Assembly (NCBI RefSeq): GCF_000315625.1
Contig: NW_005434644.1
Location: 440,973 to 504,972 of the forward strand
Length of the DNA: 64,000 nt
From: Guillardia theta CCMP2712
Lineage: Eukaryota > Protista > Cryptophyta
Direction of reading: 5' to 3'
Position numbers and translations under genes: made by a program. This document shows, one piece after another, positions 6,960 to 61,278 of this stretch. Positions within the stretch are counted from its first letter, which is position 1; each line of letters starts with the position of its first letter. Under the pieces are notes generated by a model that was not told the DNA's origin, made no database searches, and saw nothing but the letters and a program-made list of their open reading frames with translations.

Positions 6960-7471
6960 AGGGTGAACGCGGGAGCTTCGGAAGGCGGGAATGAGGGAGG
7001 GAGGGAGGAGGGCGGGAAGAAGGGAGTGATGAAGGCGGGAGGGAGGATGGGAGGGAGGGAGAGAAGCGGAGGGCGGGAAATCTTTACAGAGGCCACAAAC
7101 CTGGTACCCACCCCTACTCAAGTTCGACAGATAAACAAACGGGTAGTTAGACTTCGGATGAAGGCGGGAACTTCGGAAGGCGGGAAATATTCGAAGTTTG
7201 TTGAGCCACAAACCTGGTACCCACCCCNNNNNNNNNNNNNNNNNNNNNNNNNNNNNNNNNNNNNNNNNNNNNNNNNNNNNNNNNNNNNNNNNNNNNNNNN
7301 NNNNNNNNNNNNNNNNNNNNNNNNNNNGGTACCCACCCCTACTCAAGTTCGACAGATAACAAACGGGTAGTTAGACTTCGGATGAAGGCGGGAAGGCGGG
7401 AAGGCCACAAACCTGGTACCCACCCCTACTTCTACTTTGATAGATAAACAGACGGGTGTTTAGACTTCGGA
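6960..7471. repeat. Tandem ~90-113 bp repeats upstream of Fanzor
   Basis: GCCACAAACCTGGTACCCACCCC starts at 7092, 7205 and 7404, with a partial copy at 7328. GTTAGACTTCGG / GAAGGCGGGAA also recur. Gap at 7228-7327. Confidence 0.9.
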
Positions 7472-36377: not shown

Positions 36378-38500
36378 TCACTCCCCCATGATGTTCCTGA
36401 ACGAGATATACCGCGCGTGCCCTCTCTCGCTCCTCAACAGGTAGAAGCTTCTCAGCACCATCTGCAGCTCGCAGATGTGCCAGTCCGTGTCCTCTCTCCT
36501 GGTCTCCTCCGAGGCTATCCTCAGATTCAGGGCGACATGCCTGTATCCTCCGCTCCTCACCGAGTCTGCCGTGGGGTCCAGGTTGTTCTTGATCCTCTCC
36601 ACCACCACGTCCGGGTCCTGCAGGATCGCCCGCAAACACTTCGTGAGGTCGGAGACCGAGTCGAAGATGATGCACTGCCTGCAGACGTCCAGCAGGCAGG
36701 AAACGTCTCCCCCGTAGCACCTCATCACCTTCTCCACACATCGCTGGATCGACTTCACGTGCGCCCACACGTAGTCGTTCACACCACTCCCTTCCACGTA
36801 CGGGCCGATGTCGTCGTCATCCTCGGGAAACCACGAGCTGGCCGCGGCCTTGTGCCGTAGCAGCCCCTTGCTCGACGACACCCAGCCCAGCGTCTTTCTC
36901 CTCAGATGGGTGTCGAGCTTCATCGCCTGCTCATACAGGTATGTGAGGCTTGTGACAGGCCGTCCTCGCTTGTCCAGTTGCCTCCACTCCGGGCTTCGCG
37001 ATCTCTTCATCAAGAGATTCCCCAGTTGCCAGAACATGGGCAGCTCAGCATCTGCTTCTACCGCCGGAACATGCTTGCTTGCGAAAGGAGCCGCTATTTG
37101 CTTCAGCTCAATGAAGGAGTCCTTCCCTGACTCCTTGATAGTTTTGGACCAGATCAGATCGTACTTGTTCTTGTCGAGCTCGATGACACGGTGAGCCGAC
37201 CTGGTTGTCAGCAGCCGGAACGTTTTCACCACGATAGCGAAGAAGAGCATCGGCAACCCAAGGTAGAAGCAGACGGAGGAGAAGCTATACGGCCCGAAGG
37301 TGACGAACGGGTACATGGCAAGGCCTGTCAGCAGCACATGGATGCCTCCCCATGCAATGCTGTTGCTCAGCTCGTCCGTCCAGATGAAGTAGAAGTGCAC
37401 GACGTCGATGAAGGCCAGCGCAAGAGCCCGGGCACGCGAATAGCTGCCTTCGTGTGAGACGGCCAAGGTTGCCTCCAAGATGTGGATGAGGAAAGAGACC
37501 GGGTGCATGATCCGAATAAGCTTCTGGCCGACAAACTTCTTGTCGATGACACCGCAGAGCCCGGCCCCAAAGAGGATGAACCCGCAGAAGACCTTGGCGA
37601 ACTGGTCGAAGTAGTAGCCGGCGTCCGGCTGGAAGACTTGGAAGACCTCGACCTCCCCTCGTCCTGTTGTGGTCTTGTAGATTCCGTCCAAAAAGATGAC
37701 AAATCCTGCAAGGATGGGTGAGATGACCGACTACAGCGCTCTACAGCGCTCCAGGCTCGTGCTTCACCTGAGCAGCTCAGATAGGAGGACGACCCTGCCT
37801 GGTGCCATTGGCCGTCATGCCAGAACCAGAACTGCCAGCAGAGTCAGTCAGAAGAGACGCAGAAAAGAGTGAAGAAGGGAGGGGGGGACCTGGAATCGGA
37901 CTGGATCGTGATCTGCACTTTCGTTCCATGCAGTGCGGAAAAACCACGCATCCCATCTAACTTCGTGGCTGAGAGAGATTGTGTACTCGCTCCTTTCAAT
38001 CGTTTGGCTCTTCACATCAGCTCCCTGCTGCTCGATGCCTGCCAGACCATGCAAGACGCCCAGTTGCGATATACTGACCGCAGCGGGTCTTGCCAAGGGG
38101 TTGCGCTTGCTGAGTTCGACTAGTTTAAACCTCGCAGACATGGGAGGTTGCCGAGTGGACCAGCAGACGATGAAGTCCTCGAATATGGCATAGAAGCCGA
38201 TCAGCATGAGGAATAGCTGCATGCTCCTCAGCGTAAGGGCAGAGGCGATTGGGTTGGAGCAGCAGAAGACACTCCCGAAGGGGACGTGCCGCATCGCCGT
38301 CTTGAGGTACTCATCTGGCGTGATTGTGTTCCTGCGCCTGCCACGGTCCTTCTCAACGCAATTGTGCATGAATTTGCGCGTGAACGTCAAGTCAGTGATG
38401 AACCTCAAGATACCGACGCAAGAAGTGACAGACTGGATCTGTGCCATTTTCCTGTTCATCTGGAGACCGAGGTACCCTTCGAGAATTCCCAGGAATCTGT
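36378..38500 (-). CDS. Multi-pass membrane protein with one C-terminal RelA/SpoT-like nucleotidyltransferase domain (single-module paralog)
   Basis: ORFs 37848..38459 and 36378..37691 joined through a small exon at ~37770-37833. Several hydrophobic helices. C-terminus VKSIQRCVEK..LLDVCRQCI..RIKNNL..GGYRH..CELQ..GHARY. Start codon uncertain. Confidence 0.8.
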
Positions 38501-39354
38501 TTTGACGTATCCGTTCATGTGCTCAGTAGCTGAAGCATTCTCGGAACATCCTCCTTATCTCCTTCAAGTTTGCATCTCCGAGCGCAAACTTTGTTGAGCA
38601 AACCAGCGAGACAGCCCTGGACGCTCCCTCCCTTCTGTTCTTTGTGCACCTCACAGTCCCTCTTGTTCTCCTCAACGGTCCCTCCTGCCTCCTGCCTGCG
38701 ATATCTCCCTTACTCCCCTCCACTTGCTCCAGTCGCCCCTCCACTACAAGCTTTCGTTGAGCCTGCAAAAAATTCGAGCACCCTCCTCAAGAATACAGGA
38801 GGGGTCCTTTTAAAGGAAATCGAGGGGGTGTGTCTCGGAGATGGGTCTAGGGTCCGTGCAAGGATTTCTTTGAAAAAGTGCACACGGGTGGGTGGGGTGG
38901 TCCCATGGAGTAGAGCAGGTAGGGGTATACGGAACGGTTCTCGACTTGAACCGGTGTAACGTGCACAAGGTGCCTGAGAGAGGGGTGGTACGGAGAGGGT
39001 ACCCACTCATAGAGGACAGTTTTCATTATAAAATGGGGGGTACGAAAGCCGATTGATGTGGTAGGGGTAAATGAGTATTTTCTGAGGGCGGGTTCAGCAG
39101 CTGGTACTGCTGGGGGTGGGGATGGGGGGCGGGGTTGCACAGTATTATTTATTATACGAATTCGGAATCGTGTTCTAATAGTATTTTTAAAGTAAGACAA
39201 GTGACTCGAAAAAATTGATTTTGACTGAAATATCTATTTCTGCCAAAACCTAAAACCTTTTTTGGAGCTGAAACGACGTCTCTCTCTTCGGTCGGATGGG
39301 CAAAATACAAGTTTTCAAGGATCACAGATGCCCCTTCGTTTTGAACAGTCATGA

Positions 39355-40030
39355 TCAATGCGAGGCCCGGGTCCCCACGGCACCGGGCCCGCCGCACTGC
39401 TGACCGGCGGACTCCCGGAGTCCGAGCAAGCCTGGGCCCAGGGCCGGGCCCAGCGGGCCCCCGGCCGCCGCCGGCCCTGGCCGCCCGGGCCGGGCCCGGC
39501 GCACCGTGGCACCGTGCGGCCACGGCGGGCCCGTTCAAGCCGGGGCCCCGCCGGTCGGCTCGGACTCGGAGTCGGCCGGGGCCGGCCGCCCCGTGACGGT
39601 GCCCGGCCGCCACCGTGCCACCCGGTCCGTCATCTGCGCCCGGCCGGGCTCCTGGAATACTGACGGTCATGGCTCGGCCTCCGACCGGAGCGGCTCGGAA
39701 CGTCCGGCCGCCGGGCGGCACGGAGGGGCCCGCCGGTCCGGATCATCCGATGGCCGTCCGGGGGCCGCCGGCCGGCTGCGGCTGCCGGCGGGGGCGGCGG
39801 TGGCCGGGTCATACCGTACTACAGTAGGCTGCCACTGAGTCACGGCCCGGTCGGTCTGAGCCGGGAGTCAGCCTCGGACCGCCGGTACCGCCCGGTGACA
39901 CTGAGTGACTCAGGCTGGCCCGGCGGGCCGCGCCCCCGGCACTGCGTGGCCCCCGCCGGGCGGCCCGGCCCGCCGCGCCGCCGGGCCCCGGCCGTCCGAT
40001 TTCCGAAGCGGCTGAGTTGATCGGCCCGGG
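39355..40030. repeat. GC-rich low-complexity dispersed repeat
   Basis: Dense CCGG/GGCC content with ACTGAGT/TGACTC words, same style as 13.1-13.5 kb and 43.0-43.5 kb. Confidence 0.55.
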
Positions 40031-40135
40031 TGACAGGCTCGAGTGATGTCTCAGAGCCTGTCTGCACTGTCACACTGATGATCATTTTTGCGGCACCACC
40101 GACGGTACCGGCGTCGTTGGCGGCATATCATAACA

Positions 40136-40164
40136 AGATCATCATCATCATCATCATCATCATT

Positions 40165-40240
<76 letters not shown>

Positions 40241-40270
40241 GCTTCGTCGTCGCCGGCTTCGTCGTCGTCT
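40136..40270. repeat. (ATC)n(GTC)n microsatellite
   Basis: Directly visible. Confidence 0.95.
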
Positions 40271-41831
40271 TCACCTTCTGGTTGTTTCTCCGTGGCAGGC
40301 AGTACGAGTTCTGAACCAGCCGAAGTTGTGCGGGAGTCCGTCTGGCATCCGACGAGTGCCAACTTGGCAAGACTGTGAGACTGCTGCAGTGCCAACTTGT
40401 TGGCTGCAGCGTCGCACTGGCCGCCCGAGTACTTCCGTACGGTACGCAGTGAGGACCGTACTTGAATCATCATTGCATTCAGTGGCATTCGGACCGTCAT
40501 CGCTATCGGTCGGACTGCACATCGCCTCCGATAAGCCTGAGAAATGGATTGTTCCTGGTTGCCGAATCCATACAGCGCCAGCGGCATCATCAATGATGAC
40601 AGTGACAGGCTGCCCCGGTGCATAAGTTTGCCTAAAAAGGCGGTCAAAGCATTGCTGCAGGGCAATACTACAAAAAAATCTGTGTTTTTGCATTATTTGT
40701 GATTTACTGATCTGTTGTACATTCCTAGACAAAAGCTCAGGTTTCTACCTCCTCTTGCTCTACACAAAGATGTGCTGCCCCTGCCAAGACTGCATCCTGT
40801 TCTCAGCTTCTTCATATCCCGGCTTGCCCTTGATCGCCACCTTGGAAGACGCACGGCGCTCATTGCACAAGCATCTCTGGCTTTCGAGCGTCCTCCACGG
40901 AGCCTTTTCTCGATGGTGTCGTCCCCTGAATCCCTGCTCGCATAGGACTGATCTCGGTTTGCTCTAGGATTCGTTCCTTCTTCAGCCTGGTGTGGACGGT
41001 TGGCTTCCACTGCTGTGGGCTCTAACGCCTCCGAGGCTTGAAGGGAGGAGAGAATCTGAAGCGAGAAGTCGCACATGAGATTTGCACTGTTGGTGACTGG
41101 GCTTACGCATGCCGAGGTGCCCCATAGCTCGATGAAGGCGCTGATGTCTGTTGGCATTACGAAGGCGCTGATGTCTGTTGGCATTACGATGTCGCTGCTC
41201 GTCACTGGTGGCATGGATTTGTTTGTGGTGCGAAACACAGGTGAAACTCCGTTTGTAAGCGCTGACCCAACATGATTTCGGGGACCGTGGCAATGCCATG
41301 AACATCTCGACTCAAAATCCTCCTACCGGTCAATAATCCTGGGAGTTTGACGCAACCGGTGGGGTACTTATTCCTCTGATCTCGAGATTCTGACGTGTGA
41401 GATCGAAGGGGTGTGGTTTTGAAGGTCAACGAGTAAAAAGCTCTTAGGGGAGGTTCTGTGGCTCCCTTACCTGTGGAGATGCGAGGGGCTAGAGCTGGTC
41501 TCATAGTCTCATTAGCCCGTCAGCAAGGCCACGGCTACAGCAAAGAGAGCTCAACAGAGTTCTCCGCCCCCCTACCGACGTCTTTATAAACCCCATCCTC
41601 TTTCCCTCACCTCCAACTCACTACGTAGCCCAGCTCACTCTTCTACTGTCTTGTGCAACCTACAGAGCTCCTGCAGCTCCTTTTCGTGCCCATCCACTCT
41701 CTTCCCGGCCTTGTGCTTCTTGTTTTTTCCTTTCTCGCCTCCATGACTTCTTCTTGCTACCTTCCATCCGCATGCGACGCCACCAACCTCGAGACATCAA
41801 CACGGAACCCCTCAGGGCCCTCTCGCGCTAA

Positions 41832-42676
41832 GCAGCTCGCCTGCCTGCAGGCTTCCATCCGCCTCATCCAGTCTGGCAAGGAAGTAATGGGCGCGACGGG
41901 AGAAATGATCCAGATGAGATCGGCTGCCGTCAGCAGGAGGATAGAGGACATTGAATCAGAGGAGATGAAGGTGTAGGCTGGGGACACGAGGCAGATGGAG
42001 AAAGCACCATCCTTCTGAATGGGAATGTATGTAGAATTAGACTATACATGTATGTAGATTTTGAATAAACCTCCAGGCTTTCGAAAACGAACAAGCACAA
42101 CATTTGGAGGGAAATGCTGATGAAACAGTCTAAGTGCAGAGGGCTTTGTGGAGTAGAGCAGTGAAAACATGCTTGTGTGTGATCAACGTGTTGTGGTTGT
42201 TCAGGAACTTCTCAGCCTCCAGGTGTAACACTTGGAGGATTGGGCTCACCAGACGTGAGTGTCAAAGACTGCAAACCCGCAGAGAGAGATACATGTTCGG
42301 TGTCAAAGAAAGGTTGTGATACTTTACTATTATCATCGCATGACTCAGTGACACTCGTGGCGTCACTCATCGCGAACTTGGCGCAAGTTGTTCTATGAAG
42401 TATGTAGGATCGCAAAATTGGGCAGCTATCAACATACATTTATGTACATGTTTGACAATACTCTACATACATCATCCCTGGCAACGACGGCAGGCAACCT
42501 CGGAGATCTCCAACTGCCTCGTGTCCCCAGCCTACACCTTCATCTCCTCTGATTCAATGTCCTCTATCCTCCTGCTGACGGCAGCCGATCTCATCTGGAT
42601 CATTTCTCCCGTCGCGCCCATTACTTCCTTGCCAGACTGGATGAGGCGGATGGAAGCCTGCAGGCAGGCGAGCTGC
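41832..42676. repeat. ~170-bp inverted repeat (41832-42001 / 42507-42676) with ~500-bp spacer
   Basis: Both arms encode QLACLQASIRLIQSGKEVMGATGEMIQMRSAAVSRRIEDIESEEMKV* on opposite strands. Confidence 0.9.
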
Positions 42677-42959
42677 AGGAGAATCGAATCAGGGGTAGAA
42701 GATCAGTCAAAAACTCTAGGGAAGAGACCGTGCTATGTCAGGAAGGATCAGGTACCAGTATCGTCCCAGAGGTACGATCCTTGAACCGTTGAACTGAGCG
42801 AAGGGGGCAAGATGGATCCTGATCCGATATCCTGTCAAGCCGTGCTGCTGACTGAAGGTACCGTGATTAGGCTGAAATCCCGGGTCCGGGATCCACCAGA
42901 GTTGACTAGTTTACTCAAGTTGACATGTCTTCACTGATCTAAGTTTACTACATAGCCTT

Positions 42960-43560
42960 TTGCAGTCTCACCGACTGTCACTGACCGGGGCGCCGCCGCC
43001 GCGCCTAACTGTGGCCAGCCGGGCGGCTAAACCAGCGGCGGTCCCGGCCGTGACTCGCCGCTGAGTGCCAGTCCGACTTCTTTGACTTCCGAGTTTACTT
43101 TGACATTACTTTTAGTAACTTATAGTGGCTGTTCCCGGGCCGCGCCGGGACCGGGGCCGGGCTCCCGGCCGCGCCGGGCGGCCCCCGGCCGAGACGGTGA
43201 GTCCGGTCCGGTCCGATCAGTGCCCGGCGGCCACAGGGCCGGGGCGGGACGCCCGCCCCGGCGGACTTCCGAAGCCTTGACGTCCGATCCGCCAGGCTCC
43301 GCCCGCGATCGGACGCGGCTAGATTGAGACTAGCACGACGGACGGTGGGCCGCACTGCCAGATTAGAACAACTGTTTAGTTTGTAAGAAGCCGCAGGGAA
43401 ATTCGGCGGCACTGCCGCAGCTTCGCACCTTCAAGTTAGCGAGGCTCATGAAACTAAGTTAGGCTTAGCCGGGCGGTCGCCGTACCGTCACCGCACCGCC
43501 GTAGCTCAGTACGGATGCCCGCGATCCCACGGCGAGCTCAGTGCGGCAGCAGTCTCACTT
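42960..43560. repeat. GC-rich dispersed repeat
   Basis: Same compositional signature as the other GC-rich islands. Confidence 0.5.
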
Positions 43561-43807
43561 AGTTCATTCCGTGTTAACATTTAGTTCGGCAAGAAGTGCC
43601 GGAACGAGCTGGACAGTAGGATGGACCATGGAACCATCGGAAGGTAATCGGACATGGACGGCGATCATCGGATGATTCGACGACCGTGTGAGCAGCACAG
43701 CAGATGCTGAGGCAGCCTAAGATTGAGCACTGAGACCAGCAGCGGCAGCGCAGAGTCACGGTCAGCAACCGAAGTCTAGCGCGAGCTTCGCCTCTCTCCT
43801 CCCGGCG

Positions 43808-45409
43808 TCAGTTCTGTTTGCTGGCTTGCATGAAGGCATTCATATCTGCACATCCCATCGTATGAGCCACTTGCCGACAAAGTAGACATCGCATCCAACA
43901 AAGTAGACATCGCATCCAACAAAGTAGACATCGCAGCCAACCTGAGCAGATCGTGTCTCGCTTCGAAAGGGCTTCAGGGAGCCACTCTCTCAGTTGCTCC
44001 GCTCGATTCTCGTGGGAGGGGTGGGTGTTCAGGAAAGAGATCTACAGGAAGCAGTCACGGCCTTGCCCAGCTGGCGGACTAGTCACGGCGCCAGCAGCCT
44101 AACCACCTCTGTATCCTCCAGGGCTCCTCACCTCCTTTAGGCCACGGGCGTTCGCCATCCTCCCAAACTGCTCGAAGACTCGAGGAGCAACCGACGGGTC
44201 GTAGAAGCAGGTCTTGGCCAGGATCTGCAGCCCCAGGTAGTCGGCTTCCCGCTCCAACTTCCTGCACCACCAGCTCACGCACACAGCAAGATGCGCTCGG
44301 GAGTCTGCCTGGAGTAGGGCAGCTCAGCTCCGAGGACAAACACCCAGTTTGTGATGAAGCGCGCATTGAACAGCATGCTTGAGAAGAAATCGAGCCACAT
44401 GAGGCTGCGAACACAGCTCACGCGATGAAGCAGAGGGAGAGGGGGGGAGGTAAAGAGAGACCCAGAGTGAGTGAGAGTGAGAGAGGTAGAAAGAGGTAGA
44501 GGTAGAGGGAGAGGGGGGGAGAGAGGGAGGGAGAGATAGGGCAGGGAGTGAGGGGGGGAGGGAGGCAGAGAGGAAATGCTTGCAGGCAAGAAACCCCTGC
44601 ACTACTGACATGTTTGCAAACGCCAGCTTTTCTGCTGCGTGCCTGATCAAGCACAACGTGTGAGTCCTGGAAGTGACAAACCCCAACTGTACCTCGCCAG
44701 GACGTGTCCAGCTTCATGCGCTAAGACAGCAGCAAGCGCGTGCTCATCATAGTTGAAGGTTTGGAGAAGACCTTCGAAGACAACCACCTTCCCTCCTGGA
44801 AGGCAAGCAGCGTTGACCTGAGGGCTTCGGATCACCTTGAACTCCCATGGCAGGTTGGGGTCCGTCGCCTGCGCTACTCTCGTCCCCACTCTTGTCACCA
44901 GCTGCGCGGCAGGGTCATTGGGAGGCAGCACCGATCCGTGCATGAGGAGACGATGAAATTGACTCCTGCCAAAGGCGATCTCTCTGTCTCTGGACATGTC
45001 TATCATCCTCCACCTGCTTTCGTCTCATTGTTCGCTAGATCGGAACAACTTTTGGTCACCTGCCGGTGTAAGGAGCCTGATCAAGGTGCACAACGTAGTA
45101 GACAACGAAGGATGCAGGAACAAGTGCGATCCATGCCGATGCCCGGAAGTTGCTTGTGTTGCTGCTTCCTGCATCCTCGCCCCTCTTGAAGTGCTTGTAA
45201 CCATCGCCTTGCGGTCTCCCTGTGAACATGGAACGTGCACCCTTGTAAACCTGCCTTACTTCGATGATCCGCATGTCTCGGAGACGAGGACCAGCGCGGT
45301 AGAGAGCAGGCATGGCGGCTCCAACCTTCGCTTGCACCAGCCATGACGCCCGTCGCCCCAGGGCGGCAGCGACACCATGTCCCATGGTGAACATTTCGAA
45401 AAAACCCAC
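43808..45409 (-). CDS. OMA1: M48 family zinc metallopeptidase (Oma1-like), multi-exon
   Basis: APYTGR, VNAACLPGGKVVVFEGLL, LAAVLAHEAGHVLARH, LPYSR, EREADYLGL, FLNTHPSHENR. Confidence 0.88.
43877..43941. repeat. 21-bp tandem repeat x3 (AACAAAGTAGACATCGCATCC) in the last Oma1 intron
   Basis: Directly visible. Confidence 0.9.
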
Positions 45410-45645
45410 AAAAACCTTGAGCGTCAGGAGCCCGCCTCAGTGGTATAGGGTTGAAAGGGATGGGCCGCATATTCCCCGCTCCTTCCTCCCCGCGTATCGC
45501 ATGAGGGACCGACCTGGCGGAGACGCTGCTTGAGCGCTTCGACCTCCCTCCTGCCTCGGACTCGAGGTAGGAGTATCCTTGCCTGCCTCCCGAGTCACGC
45601 AGGAGCCTGCCTGTCTTCGGCTGATAGCTCCTGACCCACGGCACT

Positions 45646-46119
45646 ATGCCAGAATCGAGTCCTTCGGAAGTCCTCGTCGCTCAAGAGGAGTTGGCCGTGC
45701 ACATCTGTGAGGCACAGGAAAAGGTGCAGAAAGACATCATCGCAAAGATGATCTTCGATCCCAGCCCTGCACCCAGACTCCGCTTGGCAGCGGGTGGTGA
45801 AGGAGCACCGGCGTCTCCAGCGATCGAAGAGCCATTTGCGCGGGTCTCGGAATCGGCGGAGAAGCGCAATCCTCCAGGTGAAAACCAGGGCGTGCGCAGG
45901 AGAGTTGGTATTGGGTGCAACCAACGGCAGGGGCTGAAGGTTGACTCGGACCCTTTGATCTACAGTCCAGTGTCAGGGTGGGAGCAGAACGGGCGAGAAG
46001 ACGAGGAGACCAACTGCTTCATCCCCTGGATTGATCTATTTCTTCCTGCATCTAGTCCATATGGATTAGACAGAAACCCGCTGGACCAAGTGAAGCCTCT
46101 CCGGGAGTGGAATTTTTGA
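45646..46119 (+). CDS. Hypothetical protein (157 aa)
   Basis: ATG-initiated ORF with host-like codons, divergent from Oma1. Confidence 0.4.
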   Translation: MPESSPSEVLVAQEELAVHICEAQEKVQKDIIAKMIFDPSPAPRLRLAAGGEGAPASPAIEEPFARVSESAEKRNPPGENQGVRRRVGIGCNQRQGLKVDSDPLIYSPVSGWEQNGREDEETNCFIPWIDLFLPASSPYGLDRNPLDQVKPLREWNF

Positions 46120-46659
46120 ATGTGTGTTACAACATGTGATTTGGGCAGAGGTGGTTGACTTGTGAAAATGATACACGATCTTTCGTTGTACATGCGGTTT
46201 CTTGAGATTCGTGATGAATAGAATTCCTTCTTACACTGTGAGATGGTTTTTCTTTCTTCCAAGGCGTCTCTGTTCATCTTTGCACGTTCTGAATCATTGC
46301 ATTGACAAAGCTCGTTCACTCTCAGTGTCTCGTGGTCGAGCTAGGTTGAACCAGCAGGAAATCCAGGTCGGAAGGCTCTACCCGTCCGCATCCACCTTGA
46401 TGCAGCAGGGCGTTCGGAGAAGTTAGAAGTGGATGATCAATCAGGCAGGGGAGGAGAAAAATTGAACTTAACGGCTGGCAAGTGCTGTCCTCACTTTCTG
46501 AGAGCATTCTTCGCGCGATATCTTTGACCCGTGTTCCAGTCTTACAACACTTGAGGGAGGTTGACACCAGGCTCCAAATCAACTCGCGAATAAAATCGAG
46601 TCGAGTCCAAAATTGTTTTGAATAAACCTCTGAAGCAATAAACTCCATCCTCGCAAAAC

Positions 46660-49600
46660 TCACTCACATCTCAGGTTCCTATACGCTACATACCTCTTGT
46701 GCCCCTCCGTCGTCCTTAGATCCATAAACCCCTTCACCAGAAGCTGCAGCTCGCACACATGCCCCGCTACCCCCAGCTCCCTCGTCCTCTCCGTCACCAC
46801 CCGTAGGTTCACCGCCACGTCTCGGTACCCCCCCGTCGTCCGCGCGTCGAAGCTCGGGTCCAGCCTGTTCTTGATCCTCATCACCACGATCTCGGGGTCT
46901 CCCAGGATCCGCTCCAGACACTCGCACAGGTCCTCGAGCTGCTCGAAGACGATGCACTGCCGCACCACGTCCAGCAGCCTCGACACGTCGTTGTTGTAGG
47001 ATCGCACGAGCTTCTCCACCGCCCGGTCCACGCTCTTCATCGGCGCCCATCGGATCCGCTGCTGAAGCTCCTCGTCCTCCTTTGCCTCCCTCCACCCGAT
47101 ACACTCCACCAACCCTTCGCTACCTGAAGGCAGAGCCGGGAACAAGCCCCTCGACTCCTCCGCAAGCTCTTGTACCTTCTTCCGGAAGATCGGGTCGGCA
47201 AACACCGCCTGCGCGTACAGCTGGTCTAGCGACACCACCCGCGGGTCCTTGCTCAGCGGCCACACGCTCTTGCTCGGCACACGCAGGGAGAAGGAGCCGC
47301 CCTGGCTCTTCCTCAGCATCCACTCCAGCGGGCTCGACGACTCCTCTAGCGGGCTGTCGGGGTCATGCACGCGGCTCTGAGCCAGCCTGGTCGGGACTTG
47401 GACCTGCGAGACCAGCTGGCCGATGCGCTCCAGGGTCAGGCGACTGGTTTGAGAGGAAGAGAGAGACTCCCAGAGGTCGTTGTACTTGAGAAGCTCCGAC
47501 TTGACGTTCTTGAAGGCTCTGTGCAGGTGGAGTTTTCTGCCTATAGTGAAGTACAACCACATCGCTATCAGGGGGAAGTTGCTCCATCCAAGATTCGATA
47601 TGTCCGGAACACGCTTGTATCCATGGGTGACGAGGCTTGAAACCCCGACCGAGGTGAAGATGCTGTAGAACGGCAGGACTGTCATCATGTACTGCTCTCG
47701 AAACTCGATGACCATCCCGAAAGAAAGGTCCCCAATGCCCCATATCAAGCCGCTCCCCGTAGTCTCGTTGCCTACCGCGAAGAAGAAGATTTCAAACACT
47801 CCGACCACGTGAAACAAGGACGCGAACATCGTCTTCGGTACCCGTCGATACCCTAGCCTTGCCGTCACTACCGCCAAGATACATACAAGAGGCTGAATTA
47901 TCGAGATCAAAATCGCAAGGATGCGAAACACTAGATATTGTACGTTGAAGTACATCCGTGCCCCCCTGTACGCCTCGCCTTCCTTGCACACTCCCATCCC
48001 CGGCCTCTCTCTGCACGAGAAGCTCGTCCAGTCCTTCCACGCCTTCCCCGACACACTCTCTACTTCCTCCCCGCTCCCCACCGGCCGCTCCAGTATCGAG
48101 AGGTTGAAGGCGATCGGGTCGTAGCCCGCCAGCTGCTTGTCAGGGTTGAGGCTGAAGTGCCAGCCGTTGGCCTCCGCCGGCGGAGCGAAGAAGAAGTAGA
48201 GCGTGTTGTTCACCGTCTTGGTGGACGCCGGGGATCGCTGGTTGCAGCTGTCAAGCATGAGAGAGAAGTTGGAGACGGAGGCGCTGGGAATGGAGGCGCG
48301 AGGAGCTTGATCGCGGTATTCTTGTATGTGCAATCTTGCGACGTAAACTGAAGTAGCTTTGTTCTCGAGGAATCCACTGACATTGAGGGATGCGACGTAC
48401 ATGTAAGTGAGAAAGCCCGCGACGGCAAGAAGAACGACCTGCGTTGTCACCTTTTGTAACGTATTTTTGACAGGGTTGGAGGAGAAGATGACGCTCGAGG
48501 TCATGGTATTCTGTATCCCAGTAACGATGTTTCGTAGCTTCTCGTCCATGATACCCCCCGGGTACTTGCCCTTGTACTTCATGAAAGAGCTCTGTGGACA
48601 ATCATCACACTGCTCAAATGTCTGCATCCTTCCCTGTGCTCGGCTCAACCCTTCTTGGGTCGATTCAATTGACTCCGAAACTTGGCTCATGCTGACTTGG
48701 ATGGAAACGTTTTCAACCTTGGAGCAAACCTTTTCTTTGCTCCACCATGCCCTCTCGTACCTCAGTACCTGCTTCACCCCTCGGTACCGCAGCCGCCGCT
48801 CCCGTGTCGATAGCACATGCATCCCCATCACCCCCAGCCGCAGCTCGCACACATGCCCCGCTACCCCCAGCTCCCTCGTCCTCTCCGTCACCACCCGTAG
48901 GTTCACCGCCACGTCTCGGTACCCCCCCGTCGTCCGCGCGTCGAAGCTCGGGTCCAGCCTGTTCTTGATCCTCATCACCACGATCTCGGGGTCTCCCAGG
49001 ATCCGCTCCAGACACTCGCACAGGTCCTCGAGCCGCTCGAAGACGATGCACTGCCGCACCACGTCCAGCAGCCTCGACGTCTGCCCATCGCACAGGCGGA
49101 GGATCTTGTCGATGGCGCGGTCGACGTTCTTGATTCTAGGCCATTCCACGTGTCTCATCAAGATCACGTCCCCCCGGATGTCCTCCAGCCGCACGTACTC
49201 TCTCTTGTCATCCGCGCTCAGCCGTAGCGGGATCATCCCCTTGGCCTCCGCCGCAAGCCCCAGCGCCTTCTCCCTGAAGATGGGCTCTATCAGCACCGCG
49301 TGCGCGTACAGCTGGTCCAGGCTGTTGACCGGCCCCGCGGCCGATCGCTGCTCTACGACAAACGTCCCCTTTTGTACCGTCTCTGTGAGGCTTCGACCAC
49401 TCCCGTAGAGCGTGTGCAGCTGCCTCAGGCTCGACCTCGCCTCAGCGTCTTCTGCCGTCTCGTCGTCTGCCCTCGCCACGCGCTCGGCCATCGTACTTGT
49501 ATACTCCCTCACTTGCTTCGACAGGTGCTGGATCGCCTCCTTGCTCCTGTCTGCCAGCCCTTCCCACTCCCTACAAAACGCCGCCCGATCCCCCGCGATC

Positions 49601-50563
49601 ATCCGCTCCCCCCGGTACACCAGCGCCCGTCGCAGCATCAAGACCATGCTCAGCACGATGATCACGATGATGCTCTGATACGACACCAACCACGCCCCTG
49701 CTGCACACGCGTACACCACGTTCGAGAGCAGCCCCAGCTCGATCGCCGACGACTCGCTGTACAGGAGCGGCCCGGGGAACAGAAGCACGTCCTGCCCAGC
49801 ACCCCCGTCAGTCCCCCTCAGCCGCCTAGAGCTCGTCGCTCCCCGCCCTCCCGTACCTTGACCGCGACGAGCAGAAACAGAAACGAAGGTGTCCCAAGCA
49901 TCGTCTTGTGGTAATCGCCCCGTACCTCCAGCCGAAGGAATATCAGCATGTTGCAGGCCGCGTCGAGCGCTCCGAAGAAAACAAAGATCTGGAGCCCCCC
50001 CAAGCCTCATGTCAGCTCCATGCTCCACCCCGACCTCCCGCCTGACTCACCTTGTTCACCCACTGCACTCTGTCCAAGGCTGCTCCGATCCCCGCCATCA
50101 GCAGAGCAAGCGGAGGGAAGAACCAGCTCAGCAGCTCCAGACGCGCATCCCAGCCGCACGACACGTTGCTGGGTATCGCGCGCGGCTCTAGGATGACATG
50201 CATCGAGCTGATTGATGGGAAGAAGAAGTCTTGCTGCCGGAGAGCTGCGACCTCGTATATCCTCACCACCAGCCAAGGCACGGCCACGAGCAGAGCGATG
50301 AGCTGACCGGCTCTCGAGGTCATGAAGGAAGTGATGGGCTCCCATGAGAAGACAGACAGGAGGGGATCGTGACGGTAGACGTGCCTGTCCTTCAAGGCAA
50401 GGTCCATGAAGTTACCGGGCTGCTGCGTGTAGTTGCGCACAAAAGCATCCAGAAAAGACGCGTGATTGACCTCGATGATGGTCGAAAGTGCAATTTCAGT
50501 CCTTGCATCCACGGGCGACGCCGTTTCAATATCATCATTCTGACTTGTGTTGCTCATGGTCAT
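46660..50563 (-). CDS. Multi-pass membrane protein with two RelA/SpoT-like domains, copy 1 (exons 50563-50051, 49988-49857, 49791-46660)
   Basis: GT-AG introns give an in-frame join WVNK/IFVFFG..VAVK/DVLLFP. Two K..R...K / LLDVVR / RIKNR / GGYRD / CEL domains, each preceded by TM helices. Confidence 0.85.
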
Positions 50564-50982
50564 TTTGTAAATGATTCCATCCTTGTCATGAAACTGCTCA
50601 AGCAGTTTTGTGGCATGTCAAGGTCGTATCTTCTTCTGAAACCCCATGAAACAACTAGCATTGCTGTCTACCTGTAAAATATGTCAATGATGAAGCTCCG
50701 TTCTCGTCAGATGGTCATGATAATTCAACTTGAAGCAAGCATTCCTGTTTCCTTTCCCAATAGGGTTCTGCGCTCTTCTTGAGAGTAAGAGGCTTGTAGA
50801 TGAGCAGGCAAGACAAGTTTGTCCACAAATAATTCTAACACCCTGATGCGATGAGCTCGTTCCTTTTCGTTCTTTCAATCCCCTCCCCTGTTTCCACCCT
50901 CTGAGTATCTTCTCGCAGTGGTGCCAAACAGCTCCACTTGACCCTTCTCAACGCATCTTCTCGCATCCTCTCTTCACAAGTT

Positions 50983-51135
50983 CCTCGCCTCGCCTCGCCT
51001 CTCCTCTCCTCTCCTCTCCTCGCCTCGCCTCGCCTCGCCTCGCCTCGCCTCGCCTCGCCTCTCCCCTCCCCTCCCCTCCCCTCCCCTCCTCTCCTCTCCT
51101 CTCCTCTCCTCTCCTCTCCTCTCCTCTCCTCTCCT
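50983..51135. repeat. Pentanucleotide (CCTCG/CCTCT/CCTCC)n array
   Basis: Directly visible. Confidence 0.9.
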
Positions 51136-51827
51136 CTTTTCTTCTCTTATCTCATTTCCATCCTAATTCATTCTGCATCAGCGCTGGCTATGGTCGACTC
51201 TCATTGCGATCATCCCGTCAAGCCCCCAACCCCTCATCTTCTGTTCCACACCACTGTGCACTTCGGTATCACCGGTACTTTTCCCCTTCCAGAGATGGGG
51301 TATAGGGTGAAGCTTTACTAGAGGTCAGCAAGGGCCAGACCACGGGTACTTTAGTCTATATTTTGCGGGGGTGGAGGGAAAAATATCAATTTATTGGAAA
51401 CGGCGGTACAAACAAATTAGTTTTAAGGGGTTCCGCCGTACCAGTCAGAGCGGGGGAATATCATTCTAAAACCCCATTTATAAAATGTAAACCAATGGGC
51501 CCCACGTGATCCAGTCACGGCTCCGGTACCAACTTTCCTTTTTACTCAACATCGATCACAGTACAGCTGTTCGAAGTGACTGAAGTTTTTACTCACCGCT
51601 CCCAACCTGGAGGGGGTAGACAAAAAGGCGAACCTTCTACGTTCTGAAAGTGCAAAGTACCCGTCCGGATGTGGGAAAAGGCTCTGTGAGAAACGGGTGG
51701 GGTCATTACACGGTAAATCATCGTAGTGCCGCAAGGGGGGAACAGGGGTAGTCGCCGGAAGAGGGTCGTATCTAACATGGTCAGGTGACAATTGCGGCAA
51801 CATGGCCATGAAGCAACAGCAGCTCTG

Positions 51828-54800
51828 ATGTCAGCAAGTGTCATAGCTGGCGAGAGGGAGCATGGTTGCAGACAACTTGATCCGATCTCACATGAGCATA
51901 ACGACCTTCGTATGACCCAGGATCCAGAAAGGCTCGAGCCCCTGAATGAATCAGGCTGCGACCTTTCAATCGAAATCGCGGACAGGTTTGAAAGCGAAAC
52001 GTCCTCTCACGATGATTTCATCGAGAGATCTGGCACTAGAGACTACAACTTCATATTCTCATTGCTACCAGGCTCGACAGGAGAAGATTCTTTCAGTTGG
52101 AGACGAACCTATGCTTACACATACACGCAGCAGCCCGGTAACTTCATGGACCTTGCTTGGAGGGACAGGCACGTCTACCGACACGATCCCCTCCTGTCTG
52201 TCTTCTCATGGGAGCCTATCACTTCCTTCATGACCTCGAGAGCCGGTCAGCTCATCGCTCTGCTCGTGGCCGTGCCTTGGCTGGTGGTGAGGATATACGA
52301 GGTCGCAGCTCTCCGGCAGCAAGACTTCTTCTTCCCATCAATCAGCTCGATGCATGTCATCCTAGAGCCGCGCGCGATACCCAGCAACGTGTCGTGCGGC
52401 TGGGATGCGCGTCTGGAGCTGCTGAGCTGGTTCTTCCCTCCGCTTGCTCTGCTGATGGCGGGGATCGGAGCAGCCTTGGACAGAGTGCAGTGGGTGAACA
52501 AGGTGAGTCAGGCGGGAGGTCGGGGTGGAGCATGGAGCTGACATGAGGCTTGGGGGGGCTCCAGATCTTTGTCTTCTTCGGAGCGCTCGACGCGGCCTGC
52601 AACATGCTGATATTCCTTCGGCTGGAGGTACGGGGCGATTACCACAAGACGATGCTTGGGACACCTTCGTTTCTGTTTCTGCTCGTCGCGGTCAAGGTAC
52701 GGGAGGGCGGGGAGCGACGAGCTCCAGGCGGCTGAGGGGGACTGACGGGGGTGCTGGGCAGGACGTGCTTCTGTTCCCCGGGCCGCTCCTGTACAGCGAG
52801 TCGTCGGCGATCGAGCTGGGGCTGCTCTCGAACGTGGTGTACGCGTGTGCAGCAGGGGCGTGGTTGGTGTCGTATCAGAGCATCATCGTGATCATCGTGC
52901 TGAGCATGGTCTTGATGCTGCGACGGGCGCTGGTGTACCGGGGGGAGCGGATGATCGCGGGGGATCGGGCGGCGTTTTGTAGGGAGTGGGAAGGGCTGGC
53001 AGACAGGAGCAAGGAGGCGATCCAGCACCTGTCGAAGCAAGTCAGGGAGTATGCAAGTACGATGGCCGAGCGCGTGGCGAGGGCAGACGACGAGACGGCA
53101 GGAGACGCTGAGGCGAGGTCGAGCCTGAGGCAGCTGCACACGCTCTACGGGAGCGGTCGAAGCCTCACAGAGACGGTACAAAAGGGGACGTTTGTTGTAG
53201 AGCAGCGATCGGCCGCGGGGCCGGTCAACAGCCTGGACCAGCTGTACGCTCACGCGGTGCTGATAGAGCCCATCTTCAGGGAGAAGGCGCTGGGGCTTGC
53301 GGCGGAGGCCAAGGGGATGATCCCGCTACGGCTGAGCGCGGATGACAAGAGAGAGTACGTGCGGCTGGAGGACATCCGGGGGGACGTGAGCTTGATGAGG
53401 CACGTGGAATGGCCTAGAATCAAGAACGTCGACCGCGCCATCGACAAGATCCTCCGCCTGTGCGATGGGCAGACGTCGAGGCTGCTGGACGTGGTGCGGC
53501 AGTGCATCGTCTTCGAGCGGCTCGAGGACCTGTGCGAGTGTCTGGAGCGGATCCTGGGAGACCCCGAGATCGTGGTGATGAGGATCAAGAACAGGCTGGA
53601 CCCGAGCTTCGACGCGCGGACGACGGGAGGGTACCGAGACGTGGCGGTGAACCTACGGGTGGTGACGGAGAGGACGAGGGAGCTGGGGGTAGCGGGGCAC
53701 GTTTGCGAGCTGCGGCTGGGGGTGATGGGGATGCATGTGCTATCGACACGGGAGCGGCGGCTGCGGTACCGAGGGGTGAAGCAGGTACTGAGGTACGAGA
53801 GGGCATGGTTGGCAAAGCGTGGTACTTGGTCAATGTCGGAGCTGGTAGAGGAAACGAAACTTTCATCAATCCAAGTCAGCATGAGCCAAGTGTCTGCGTC
53901 GTTTGTTTGGAGTCAAGAGGGAATAACGCAGTCCGAAGCGATAATACAGATGTATGAAGCTTCCACTGAATGCCCACAGAGCTCTTTCATGAAGTACAAG
54001 GGCAAGTACCCGGGGGGTATCATGGACGAGAAGCTACGAAACATCGTCACCGGGATACAGAATACCATGACCTCGAGCGTCATCTTCTCCTCCAACCCTG
54101 TCAAAAATACGTTACAAAAGGTGACAACGCAGGTCGTTCTTCTTGCCGTCGCGGGCTTTCTCACTTACATGTACGTCGCATCCCTCAATGTCAGTGGATT
54201 CCTCGAGAACAAAGCTACTTCAGTTTACGTCGCAAGATTGCACATACAAGAATACCGCGATCAAGCTCCTCGCGCCTCCGTTCCCAGCGCCTCCGTCTCC
54301 AACTTCTCTCTCATGCTTGACAGCTGCAACCAGCGATCTCCGGCGTCCACCAAGACGGTGAACAACACGCTCTACTTCTTCTTCGCTCCGCCGGCGGAGG
54401 CCAACGGCTGGCACTTCAGCCTCAACCCTGACAAGCAGCTGGCGAGCTACGACCCGATCGCCTTCAACCTCTCGATACTGGAGCGGCCGGTGGGGAGCGG
54501 GGAGGAAGTAGAGAGTGTGTCGGGGAAGGCGTGGAAGGACTGGACGAGCTTCTCGTGCAGAGAGAGGCCGGGGATGGGAGTGTGCAAGGAGGGCGAGGCG
54601 TACAGGGGGGCTCGGATGTACTTCAACGTACAATATCTAGTGTTTCGCATCCTTGCGATTTTGATCTCGATAATTCAGCCTCTTGTATGTATCTTGGCGG
54701 TAGTGACGGCAAGGCTAGGGTATCGACGGGTACCGAAGACGATGTTCGCGTCCTTGTTTCACGTGGTCGGAGTGTTTGAAATCTTCTTCTTTGCGGTAGG

Positions 54801-55911
54801 CAACGAGACTACGGGGAGCGGCTTGATATGGGGCATTGGGGACCTTTCTTTCGGGATGGTCATCGAGTTTCGAGAGCAGTACATGATGACAGTCTTGCCG
54901 TTCTACAGCATCTTCACCTCGGTCGGGGTTTCAAGCCTCGTCACCCATGGATACAAGCGTGTTCCGGACATATCCAATCTTGGATGGAGCAACTTCCCCC
55001 TGATAGCGATGTGGTTGTACTTCACTATAGGCAGAAAACTCCACCTGCACAGAGCCTTCAAGAACGTCAAGTCGGAGCTTCTCAAGTACAACGACCTCTG
55101 GGAGTCTCTCTCTTCCTCTCAAAACAGCCGCCTGACCCTGGAGCGCATCGGCCAGCTGGTCTCGCAGGTCCAAGTGCCGACCAGGCTGGCTCAGAGCCGC
55201 GTGCATGACCCCGACAGCCCGCTAGAGGAGTCGTCGAGCCCGCTGGAGTGGATGCTGAGGAGGAGCCAGGGCGGGTCCTCCTCGCTGCGTGTGCCGAGCA
55301 AGAGTGTGTGGCCGCTGAGCAAGGACCCGCGGGTGGTGTCGCTAGACCAGCTGTACGCGCAGGCGGTGTTTGCCGACCCGATCTTCCGGAAGAAGGTACA
55401 GGAGCTGGCGGAGGAGTCGAGGGGCTTGTTCCCGGCTCTGCCTTCAGGTAGCGAAGAGTCGGTGGAGTGTATCGGGTGGAGGGAGGCAAAGGAGGACGAG
55501 GAGCTTCAGCAGCGGATCCGATGGGCGCCGATGAAGAGCGTGGACCGGGCGGTGGAGAAGCTCGTGCGATCCTACAACAACGACGTGTCGAGGCTGCTGG
55601 ACGTGGTGCGGCAGTGCATCGTCTTCGAGCGGCTCGAGGACCTGTGCGAGTGTCTGGAGCGGATCCTGGGAGACCCCGAGATCGTGGTGATGAGGATCAA
55701 GAACAGGCTGGACCCGAGCTTCGACGCGCGGACGACGGGGGGGTACAGGGACGTACTTGTGAATCTACGGGTGGTGACGGAGAGGACGAGGGAGCTGGGG
55801 GTAGCGGGGCACGTGTGCGAGCTGCAGCTTCTGGTGAAGGGGTTTATGGATCTAAGGACGACGGAGGGGCACAAGAGGTATGTAGCGTATAGGAACCTGA
55901 GATGTGAGTAG
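51828..55911 (+). CDS. Multi-pass membrane protein with two RelA/SpoT-like domains, copy 2 (exons ~51828-52502, 52565-52696, 52762-55911)
   Basis: Near-identical inverted paralog of copy 1 with the same two introns. Confidence 0.85.
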
Positions 55912-59321: not shown

Positions 59322-61278
59322 GCATTGTCTTGTCCAATTCGACAAATCAAAAGTGCTTGCCATGGACATAATCTTTCTCACCATCCTCGTTGCTTGCTGG
59401 TTCTCCTCCGTCATCCTGTGACCAACTGCTTACCCTACAGAACCCCGTCCACATGCTTGTGAGCCGACAAGGAGCTCCTACTTTACCTCGAGAGGAGGAA
59501 GAGGAGGAGGAGGAGGAGAGGATTGAGAAGCAGGAGGCAGCTCCTGTCCGCAAGAGGAACGGGAAGAGGGTTGAGGTGCAGCCCATCCCGGAAATTTCTA
59601 TCTTGCGCAGCAATCAGCAGCAAGAGGAGGAAGAGGAGGAGGAAGGGAAGGAGGAGGGCGGGGGTCATGAGCACCAGTTCTCATCCTCATTCCTGGATTA
59701 CCATGCTCTTGCTCAGCGGCAAGCGGAGGAAATGCGATTGAGGACGATGCAAATGAACGTCAAGTCTCGTGAAGGGGACGAGGACGAGGACGAGGACGAG
59801 GAGGACGAGAGGAGGAGGATGGAGGACCCCAGGCTGCGAGTGAGCTGGCGAGATGAAGAGCGGACTGCCTCGCAGGCGAAGCGCGAGCAGGCAGTGCAGC
59901 GACTGAGGGAGATGATGGGCGAGGAGGAGCTGCCGGCGGTGAGTGGAAAGCTCGTCGGCTGCTGAGCGCCTGACTTTTCTTGCAGCCACCCGAGTTTGGC
60001 GGGAGAGAGCAGCTGGGAAAACCTCCGTCGATCCTGAGAGACTCGGTCTTGGTGGGGCGAGGAGAGGAGGGGAGAGGAGAAGAGTGGGGAGGGGAGGGGA
60101 GGAAGCCCTTTCCGCAGCCTGAGGTTGAGGAGGAGACGATGGGTCGCTCGAGCTTTGCTGGTTGGCCTCTTCCCTTCCCCTCTCCTCTCCTTAAAAAGGT
60201 ATATATCATGCGTCTCAACCTGCTGATACTGGAGAGCAGGTTGGAGACAGGACTGGGGAAGGGCAGGATGTTCGAGCCTCCTAAGCAGGAGGAGGNNNNN
60301 NNNNNNNNNNNNNNNNNNNNNNNNNNNNNNNNNNNNNNNNNNNNNNNNNNNNNNNNNNNNNNNNNNNNNNNNNNNNNNNNNNNNNNNNNNNNNNNGGTCT
60401 TCTTTCTTGTTCCAGCAGCTCGCTCGCTTCCTCGCTCGCCCCCCCCCCCTCCCCCTCCCTCCTCCTCCTCCTCCTCCTCTTTCTCCTTCTCCTTCTTCTT
60501 CTCCCTCTCGAGCTACTTCGACCGCCATGACTTTATACCCCATCGTTCTTCAACCTCATCCGCGTCTTCTTGGCAGGACCTGAGCGCACAAGGAGGAGAG
60601 CCTGAAGGTTCTTCACTCCTGACGTGCGAGGAAGACACTCACCGCCTTCCCTAGCCCCCACAGGCCCCATCCTCTACGAGGGCATCCTCAGGAAGAAGAA
60701 GGAGTCGCACGGCAGGTCTCCTTCCTACTCTCCCCCTCCTTGTGCTCGCCCTCGTCCTCGCCCTCCTCGTCCTCTTCGTCCTTCTACTCGTCCTCGTCCT
60801 CGTCCTAGTCCACCTCGTCCTTCTTGTCCACTCGTTCATCGTGCACTCTTTTCTCTTGTTCTTCTCCAACGCCCCCGTCAGGTTCGAGGATCCCTACAAG
60901 ATGGTCTGCGTCTGCCGCCTGCAAGGAACATGCTTGCGTGTCCGCTTGACGCACAACGGAGAGGTCAAGGAGAGGAGGAGGGGAGAAGAGGAGACGGCGA
61001 GGAAGCAGAGGGGAAGAAGCAGGCGGGAGGAGCGAATGGTGGCGGGAGGAGCTAGGAGGAGGAGCTGGGAAGGGGAAAGCTGAGGAAGAGGAGCAGGTGG
61101 TAGGGCTGGAGGAGCAGTATCATCTCAACGACTCTCCTCTCGGATGGAAATTAATCCCGAGAAGCGACAAAGCTGACAAGTTCTCCCTCGTTCGAAACCT
61201 CCCGAATCCCAATGAGGTTCTCCTGCTCCTGCTCCTGCTCCTGCTCTCGCTCTCGCTCTCGCTCCCGCTCTCGCTCCC

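Follow-up and report, generated by a model that had tools for sequence, protein, structure and literature searches.

Divergent RelA/SpoT-type synthetase domains in a family of predicted polytopic membrane proteins of the cryptophyte Guillardia theta

To our knowledge, the only eukaryotic enzymes known to make alarmones are the soluble RelA/SpoT homologue (RSH) enzymes of plastids. Reviews of algal RSH enzymes cover plastid proteins only. Among the closest bacterial systems, RelQ and RelP are small alarmone synthetases, CapRel and FaRel2 are tRNA-pyrophosphorylating toxSAS proteins, and the toxin Tas1 (Apk1) is an extremely fast (p)ppApp-making enzyme. Here we describe three genes (A, B and C) of Guillardia theta CCMP2712, located within positions 36378-55911 of the window, the 64,000-nucleotide stretch of DNA that was analysed (contig C30:440973-504972 of a genome of 87.1 Mb in 669 contigs). 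A domain of about 190 residues (SYNTH) occurs five times in these genes: once in gene A, and twice each in genes B and C, as an internal (SYNTH1) and a C-terminal (SYNTH2) copy. The superfamily itself is known; what is new is the architecture in which the RSH synthetase domain is found, which is eukaryotic, membrane-bound and often tandem. Literature searches found no paper describing this membrane-bound RSH-domain family.

The SYNTH domain is almost certainly a true, very divergent RelA/SpoT homologue of the small alarmone synthetase type. A profile (A1) was built from an alignment of 83 domain sequences. A search with A1 through 177,635 sequences of the Protein Data Bank (PDB) finds only Tas1 (6ox6, E 1e-4) and RelP/YwaC (6fgk, E 0.012). 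Weak hits to the Pfam family RelA_SpoT (PF04607) are observed for 28 of the 83 members of A1, and no other Pfam family recurs. One paralog in the genome, P0160 (GUITHDRAFT_99165), exceeds the RelA_SpoT gathering score (34.2 versus 27 bits). Some paralogs have the UniRef label 'RelA/SpoT domain-containing protein', and a Pfam search with 41 long relatives finds no domain besides weak RelA_SpoT.

An alignment-based AlphaFold2 (AF2) model of the gene A domain, which replaced a single-sequence model with a pLDDT of 36.5, has a pLDDT of 90.9 and a pTM of 0.86. With this model, the best 50 rows of a Foldseek search are all RSH synthetases, 12 of them at E<=0.001. The Z scores from VIA-align are 13.9 for RelQ, 13.6 for RelP, 12.4 for CapRel and 11.3 for Tas1, and 29 RSH entries (Z 13.9 to 7.4) precede the first other fold, Pol X (Z <=6.8). 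The first-pass annotation of this DNA, made from the letters alone, had read the domain as a RelA/SpoT-type synthetase and had named a Pol-beta/RelA-type fold beforehand as the test. The fold is borne out by the model, Foldseek and VIA-align, and the profile, the Foldseek matches and the score of P0160 agree on a divergent but true member of the superfamily. The nearest homolog by sequence is Tas1/Apk1, and the nearest by structure are RelQ and RelP. Cys-rich copper-storage proteins (E 0.2-0.5) appeared in a one-domain phmmer search against the PDB, in which Tas1 was found at E 1; they were read as chance matches, and the profile search resolved the point.

The domain is not confined to this locus. 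A genome-wide count of paralogs, which had been suggested at the outset, gives 87 domain matches in Guillardia, at about 55 loci, about 30 of which have two domains (by a hand count of the match table). When 1.84 billion cluster representatives were searched exhaustively with HMMER, 1637 clusters matched at E<=1e-3, 94 of them even at E<=1e-30. With matches in such numbers in the genome and in the library, the domain is not a product of chance. The named relatives are mostly from cryptophytes (Hemiselmis, Hanusia and Rhodomonas), with more distant ones from the green alga Cymbomonas and a diplonemid, and Atlas clusters that share the predicted shape come most often from diatoms. The family is large and cryptophyte-centred, and consists of polytopic membrane proteins. 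In the diplonemid protein (Namystynia P0185) the SYNTH-type domain is fused to leucine-rich repeats (LRR), and in some Atlas clusters a related domain is fused to tetratricopeptide (TPR) or ankyrin repeats; both arrangements recall innate-immune sensors. A short domain fragment at C49:535995-536226, with in-frame TGA and TAG stops, adjoins an intact family member and is likely a pseudogene remnant.

The family was expected to be distinct from canonical RSH enzymes, and the genome search agrees. The only canonical hits to RelA_SpoT together with HD_4 are in two long RSH genes on other contigs (L001, C47:129763-133212, and L002, C24:129720-133109), which are presumed to be the plastid enzymes. 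An HD hydrolase domain had been noted as missing from the proteins of the window; Pfam finds no domain of any kind in them at E<=1, and NCBIfam likewise gives nothing.

Genes B and C are real, are transcribed with splicing and are under purifying selection. Gene C (51828..55911, plus strand) encodes a double-module protein of 1318 residues, in exons 51828-52502, 52565-52696 and 52762-55911 separated by GT..AG introns of 62 and 65 nt. This model is based on spliced contigs and on the open frame of the joined exons. Contigs from two public runs (X1 and X2) skip exactly the two introns (52503-52564 and 52697-52761), a transcript contig of 1160 nt matches the gene with zero mismatches, and the 3' end is covered by reads of one raw-read RNA-seq run. 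Further transcript contigs run on into gene B's own, distinct 5' exon, showing that both of these tandem genes are expressed.

Gene B (46660..50563, minus strand), also a double-module gene, is GUITHDRAFT_107714 (P0152, 1258 residues). In a tblastn search this protein maps to the locus at 99.4-99.8% identity in three exons, approximately 50563-50048, 49991-49857 and 49800-46663. Genes B and C are the two arms of an inverted, head-to-head duplication (plus strand 52122-55909 versus minus strand 50431-46662), with 97% identity over 3.79 kb. The spacer of 1.26 kb between them (50564..51827) is probably a shared divergent promoter region. Outside a mosaic block (see below), the two genes have 29 synonymous and 13 non-synonymous differences, for a dN/dS of 0.14. 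An explanation by chance motif resemblance or by an annotation artefact, with no RSH domain or no real genes behind the motifs, could draw on the failure of Pfam, at its default threshold, to find anything in the window proteins and on the poor single-sequence AF2 model. It is refuted by these spliced transcripts and this dN/dS, and by the convergence of profile, structure and paralog evidence on RSH.

Gene A (36378..38459, minus strand) is a single-module gene, defined by its open reading frames (ORFs) and by similarity to its orthologue P0151 (653 residues, 73-75% identity, aligned over the full gene). The approximate model has 640 residues in exons 38459-37890 and 37730-36378, with the intron placed by similarity to P0151. 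The ORFs and the coordinates of the five SYNTH copies, placed by hmmsearch with A1, confirm the three paralogs and five domain copies where they had been reported. The repeat is real, and its original length of about 125 residues is too short: the conserved unit has about 190 residues, because the N-terminal helix (LDQLY..A) belongs to the small-alarmone-synthetase fold.

A third, nearly identical double-module gene is located on the same contig at C30:526797-529484, about 20.5 kb past the end of the window, which makes the locus a small paralog cluster. Pfam searches with eight ORFs between and beside the three genes found nothing relevant. There are no assembly gaps within 36378-55911. Elsewhere in the window, runs of N (assembly gaps) are present at 3926-4918, 7228-7327, 16869-16968, 60296-60395 and 63647-63746, and the first of these accounts for an apparent low-GC bin at 4-6 kb.

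The residues expected in a synthetase active site are largely present. Lys71, Arg75, Lys79, Asp93, Arg96, Arg142, Glu166, His183 and Arg190 are invariant in A1. In the hidden Markov model alignment to RelP, Lys71 is placed on the Lys of the RxK motif, Lys79 on the Lys of SxxxK, Asp93 on the Asp of DxxGxR, GYR on GYR and Glu166 on the Glu of ExQ. The R-v-K-N segment (R124-x-K126) is placed on K-V-K-D of RelP, which we take to be the RxKD motif of the bifunctional Rel enzymes, in contact with the acceptor phosphates. All of the motifs quoted in the first-pass annotation (K..R..K, LLDV.RQ, RIKN, GGYRD/H, CELQ and GH.RY) were found. The basic ATP-phosphate motif has Lys71, Lys79 and Arg82 at the canonical spacing; its first Arg is unconserved and its Ser is Arg75. 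The DxxGxR motif has the form DxxR throughout the family. The spacing of K71/R75/K79/R82...D93...Y141...E166-x-Q168 mirrors that of the donor-site and catalytic residues of FaRel2 (K66, S70, K74, R77, D90, Y128, E145 and Q147; PMC11782079). Tyr141 is located in the β3-β4 loop of the AF2 model, and the G-loop is placed between the third and fourth strands (PMC11782079).

There are clear differences between the two kinds of copy. They were compared in 36 two-domain proteins and 134 single hits, sequences that are related to each other, so that the counts do not represent independent events. In SYNTH2 and the single copies, each key residue is 86-100% conserved, and the set that matches the donor-site and catalytic residues of FaRel2 (Lys71, Arg75, Lys79, Arg82, Asp93, Tyr141, Glu166 and Gln168) reaches 92-100%; for Gly140 and Tyr141 the values are 94-100% in SYNTH2 and 91-96% in the single copies. 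Asp93 and Glu166 are conserved at 92-100% in every domain class, and SYNTH1 keeps Lys71, Lys79, Asp93, Arg96 and Glu166 at this level. Other positions in SYNTH1 are relaxed: Arg75 (72%), Glu78 (42%), Arg82 (19%), Tyr141 (50%), Asn147 (61%), Gln168 (42%), Gly182 (19%), His183 (72%) and Arg190 (50%).

The copies in the window follow this pattern. The domain of gene A (36384..36965, minus strand), for which the synthetase fold is indicated by hmmsearch, the AF2 model and the fold matches, has the complete set of key residues (K71, R75, K79, R82, D93, R96, R124, K126, Y141, R142, N147, E166, Q168 and H183). By hmmsearch and the residue table, the set is also complete in SYNTH2 of gene B (46666..47247, minus strand) and of gene C (55324..55905, plus strand). 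The internal SYNTH1 copies of gene B (48763..49338, minus strand) and gene C (53215..53790, plus strand) are both partly degenerate, with ELR in place of ELQ, RR in place of GH, and the final Arg absent.

The core of SYNTH1 in these two genes seems to have been affected by a recent event. A tract of 256 nt in SYNTH1 of gene C (53475..53730, plus strand) is 94.5-97.7% identical to 55587-55842 in SYNTH2, compared to 23-49% for the flanks. The counterpart tracts in gene B are 48823-49078 and 46729-46984. The tract covers the catalytic core from Asp93 to Glu166 and points to recent intragenic gene conversion, by which SYNTH1 of genes B and C would have obtained a SYNTH2-like core. In addition, the linker after SYNTH1 contains a block (53771..53969, plus strand) in which the identity of genes B and C falls to about 60%, with a dS of about 1, compared to 97% in the rest of the duplication; the block is probably a mosaic patch that was copied from some other paralog. 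In a tree of the domains, the SYNTH1 and SYNTH2 labels cluster (9 changes versus 24 in shuffles). They do not form two clean clades, so the tree does not establish a single ancient tandem duplication.

The membrane part was analyzed by hydropathy. P0152 contains about six helices, SYNTH1, one helix, a loop of 147 residues, about five helices and SYNTH2, in this order. With coordinates transferred to gene C (plus strand), the first membrane bundle, of about six helices with two introns inside, is at 52242..52920 and ends in RRALVYRGER. The seventh transmembrane helix (54121..54177) leads from SYNTH1 to the loop (54178..54618), and the second bundle, of about five helices, is at 54619..55059 and ends in RKLHLHRAFKNVK. 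The product of gene A matches the latter half of this arrangement: it has a Lys/Arg-rich N-terminus, a first transmembrane helix, an outward loop of about 150 residues, about five further helices and one SYNTH domain. The proteins had been described as membrane proteins, with each SYNTH copy behind a bundle of hydrophobic helices and with no evident plastid presequence. Hydropathy bears out the helix bundles and shows the proteins to be polytopic, with 6-12 helices each, and every copy directly follows helices that end in a Lys/Arg-rich segment. By inspection, neither a signal nor a plastid presequence is seen at the N-termini, which are hydrophilic or basic.

The loop of about 147 residues is probably extracellular or lumenal. 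It contains four N-x-S/T sequons and three Cys residues, as well as a DP(V/I)xF motif that is conserved across the family (A2 consensus) and in the loop of gene A. There is no Pfam hit in this loop; a resemblance to discoidin (F5/8 type C) domains has an Atlas feature score of 0.85, which is sub-threshold and a weak lead. In comparison to the four sequons of the loop, one is found in the 394 residues of the SYNTH1 region and none in the 283 residues of the SYNTH2 region. A Lys/Arg-rich juxtamembrane stretch lies between the last helix and each domain, and the protein of gene A starts with a basic segment of about 65 residues ahead of its first helix. From hydropathy, charge and sequons, we infer that both domains face the cytosol and that the loop is on the outside.

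The reading that we favor, with a probability of about 0.5, is that these are membrane proteins with cytosolic RSH domains, of which the C-terminal ones are active and are controlled through the membrane or the outward part. In the proposed mechanism, the active domains would be SYNTH2 and the one copy of gene A, with ATP-Mg bound through Lys71, Lys79, Arg82, Asp93 and Glu166. The β,γ-pyrophosphate of ATP would be moved to the 3'-OH of a purine nucleotide, which would be stacked on Tyr141 of the G-loop and held by R124-x-K126 and Arg142. The product would be (p)ppApp and/or (p)ppGpp, made in the cytosol. SYNTH1, relaxed at the substrate-contact positions, would probably be a regulatory or scaffolding partner; a prediction of the complex between SYNTH1 and SYNTH2 of P0152 has a score of 0.00, which gives no verdict either way. 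The membrane bundle and the sequon-rich outward loop would control the activity, in the manner of a receptor enzyme.

Confidence differs among the parts of this proposal. Catalytic activity is rather probable. A nucleotide alarmone as the predicted product comes close to an even chance without quite reaching it, and control by a signal from outside is a tentative suggestion, somewhat below that. Membrane proteins of Guillardia theta may carry out alarmone synthesis outside the plastid. In its widest form, the proposal would make the approximately 55 cryptophyte membrane proteins a receptor-type alarmone system outside the plastid, with distinct outward or membrane-embedded sensors coupled to a cytosolic pyrophosphokinase whose product, (p)ppApp or (p)ppGpp, would serve as a second messenger in a eukaryote; in the tandem form, the degenerate first domain would act as a regulatory partner, as in the C1/C2 pair of cyclases. 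We regard this wider form as doubtful.

Several observations weigh against the reading of active, cytosolic and regulated enzymes. The first group concerns the active site. Throughout the family, the position two residues before Lys71 lacks a conserved Arg, Arg75 takes the place of the Ser in the RxKxxxSxxxK motif, and Asn147 (100% in SYNTH2 and 91% in the single copies) takes that of the His in GYxSxH. With these three residues changed, the chemistry or the substrate could differ. The domain of gene A scores 12.6 bits with PF04607, below the gathering cut-off of 27 bits. The same replacements, the relaxed SYNTH1 copies and the sub-threshold Pfam scores in the window would also be explained if the domain were a pseudoenzyme, in which the fold and its binding of a nucleotide (ATP or an alarmone) serve as a regulatory or dimerization module of a channel, transporter or receptor. 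Tas1, however, also has an Arg at position 75, DxxR, and no Arg two residues before the first Lys, and these departures are compatible with a very active enzyme since this fast enzyme has the same K-S-x-E-R-A-x-x-K...D-x-x-R variant. Asp93 (Mg) and Glu166, which are needed only for catalysis, are kept in all classes including SYNTH1, and the near-invariance of Gln168, Tyr141 and Lys126 in SYNTH2 is hard to explain without turnover. We regard a pseudoenzyme as quite unlikely. The replacement of the His had been used in the first-pass annotation as an argument for altered chemistry. The nearly invariant Asn147 upholds the replacement; the argument drawn from it is weak, because the donor-site and catalytic residues listed for FaRel2 do not include this His (PMC11782079).

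The second group concerns function. Leucine-rich, TPR and ankyrin repeat fusions in the relatives suggest conflict or defence effectors over second-messenger signalling, and neither a stand-alone HD_4 hydrolase nor a separate small alarmone hydrolase was detected in the genome. A tRNA-modifying role, or one as a cell-death or defence effector, fits the evidence about as well as a signalling role does. This main rival holds that the proteins are toxSAS-like and block tRNA or drain ATP, causing a shut-down of translation or metabolism in place of a graded signal. Besides the repeat fusions and the missing dedicated hydrolase, it would account for a toxin, Tas1, being the best sequence match and for the Z score of CapRel, a tRNA pyrophosphokinase, lying no more than about 1.5 below that of the top row; the expansion to about 55 loci, marked by mosaicism, gene conversion and recent duplication, is also typical of an immune-type gene family. 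On the other hand, no antitoxin or immunity partner is evident, and transcription appears constitutive in several unrelated runs. The basic residues on the acceptor side (Arg124, Lys126, Arg142 and Arg190) are strongly conserved, and the positive patch for the acceptor is large in alarmone synthetases and smaller in the tRNA-targeting FaRel2 (PMC11782079). The evidence on these residues leans toward a nucleotide acceptor, although not decisively (PMC11782079). On balance, we consider an effector rather unlikely, though less so than a pseudoenzyme.

The third group concerns topology, which was derived from hand-made hydropathy and charge rules. A long hydrophobic stretch at residues 828-863 of P0152 may form either a single helix or a pair, and a pair would flip SYNTH2 to the opposite side of the membrane. 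This ambiguity in the helix count of the second bundle gives some room to a lumenal or extracellular enzyme that would make extracellular alarmones, as do exported synthetases in bacteria (PMC12691689), and one such bacterial synthetase (8vx3, Z 11.2) is among the fold matches. Such an orientation is very unlikely, as both domains are flanked by Lys/Arg-rich juxtamembrane segments and their regions have nearly no sequons in comparison to the four in the loop. Moreover, ATP is a cytosolic substrate, and the basic N-terminus and six helices of the gene A protein correspond to a topology with both ends inside.

The favored reading of cytosolic, membrane-controlled synthetases bears on whether (p)ppGpp or (p)ppApp is made in the cytosol of eukaryotes, and by which enzyme. 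One report describes ppGpp in animals (PMC7666150), and Atkinson et al. find no synthetase in animals (PMC3153485). A large, constrained and membrane-anchored family that keeps its catalytic residues and is most like a fast (p)ppApp toxin provides concrete candidates. If active, these proteins would be a new class of eukaryotic receptor enzyme, or would represent toxSAS chemistry that a eukaryote employs for defence or cell death; should they prove inactive, a bacterial toxin fold would have been reused, unusually, as a module of membrane proteins.

A comparison can be made with the described systems. The class III membrane adenylyl cyclases, with their 6TM-C1-6TM-C2 organization, resemble the tandem proteins in overall layout: a helix bundle and a catalytic-type domain are followed by a second bundle and a second domain, and the first domain is the more degenerate one. 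The likeness is one of analogy only: their catalytic fold is unrelated, and no cyclase hit (PF00211) is found by Pfam in the window proteins. The RSH active site is located within one domain, and not at the interface of C1 and C2 as in the cyclases.

The plastid RSH enzymes (RSH1-4 and CRSH) belong to the same superfamily and are encoded by eukaryotic nuclear genes. They are soluble plastid proteins with HD hydrolase and TGS/ACT or EF-hand domains, whereas the window proteins have no HD domain, no presequence and 6-12 membrane helices. Another eukaryotic group is 'divRel', the unplaced synthetase-only RSH proteins of fungi, Dictyostelium and the diatoms Thalassiosira and Phaeodactylum (Atkinson et al. 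2011; PMC3153485). These are similar in being synthetase-only, and the Atlas relatives of the Guillardia domain are commonest in diatoms. The two were compared by description only, and no transmembrane segments, tandem domains or cryptophytes are mentioned for divRel (PMC3153485).

Among the bacterial and phage toxin-antitoxin effectors, CapRel (Z 12.4) and FaRel2 (Z 6.2-6.6) have the same fold and the same spacing of the donor residues. Their acceptor is the CCA end of tRNA, and FaRel2 has a smaller positive acceptor patch (PMC11782079), compared to the several invariant basic residues on the acceptor side in the Guillardia family. RelQ and RelP of Firmicutes (SAS1 and SAS2; 5ded, 6fgk and 6ex0) are closest in structure, with Z scores of 13.0-13.9 and an rmsd of 2.4-2.8 over 145-150 residues, and the catalytic Asp, the RxKD-like strand, GYR and ExQ are aligned. 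They are soluble homotetramers that make (p)ppGpp, have only 14-19% sequence identity to the Guillardia domain, and keep three residues that the Guillardia family replaces, namely the Arg of RxK, the Ser of the same motif and the His of GYxSxH.

Tas1/Apk1 (6ox6), the type VI secretion (p)ppApp toxin of Pseudomonas aeruginosa, is a soluble secreted bacterial protein with a neutralizing immunity protein. The Guillardia proteins, in contrast, are eukaryotic products of spliced nuclear genes, are polytopic in the membrane, in many cases have two domains, and have no immunity partner in sight. Tas1 is nevertheless the best profile match (E 1e-4, with a fold Z of 11.3). In the alignment of profile positions 59-102 with Tas1 residues 272-315, the two share the variant donor signature K-S-x-E-R-A-x-x-K...Y-x-G-D...D-x-x-R-x-x-I, in place of the canonical RxKxxxSxxxK...DxxGxR.

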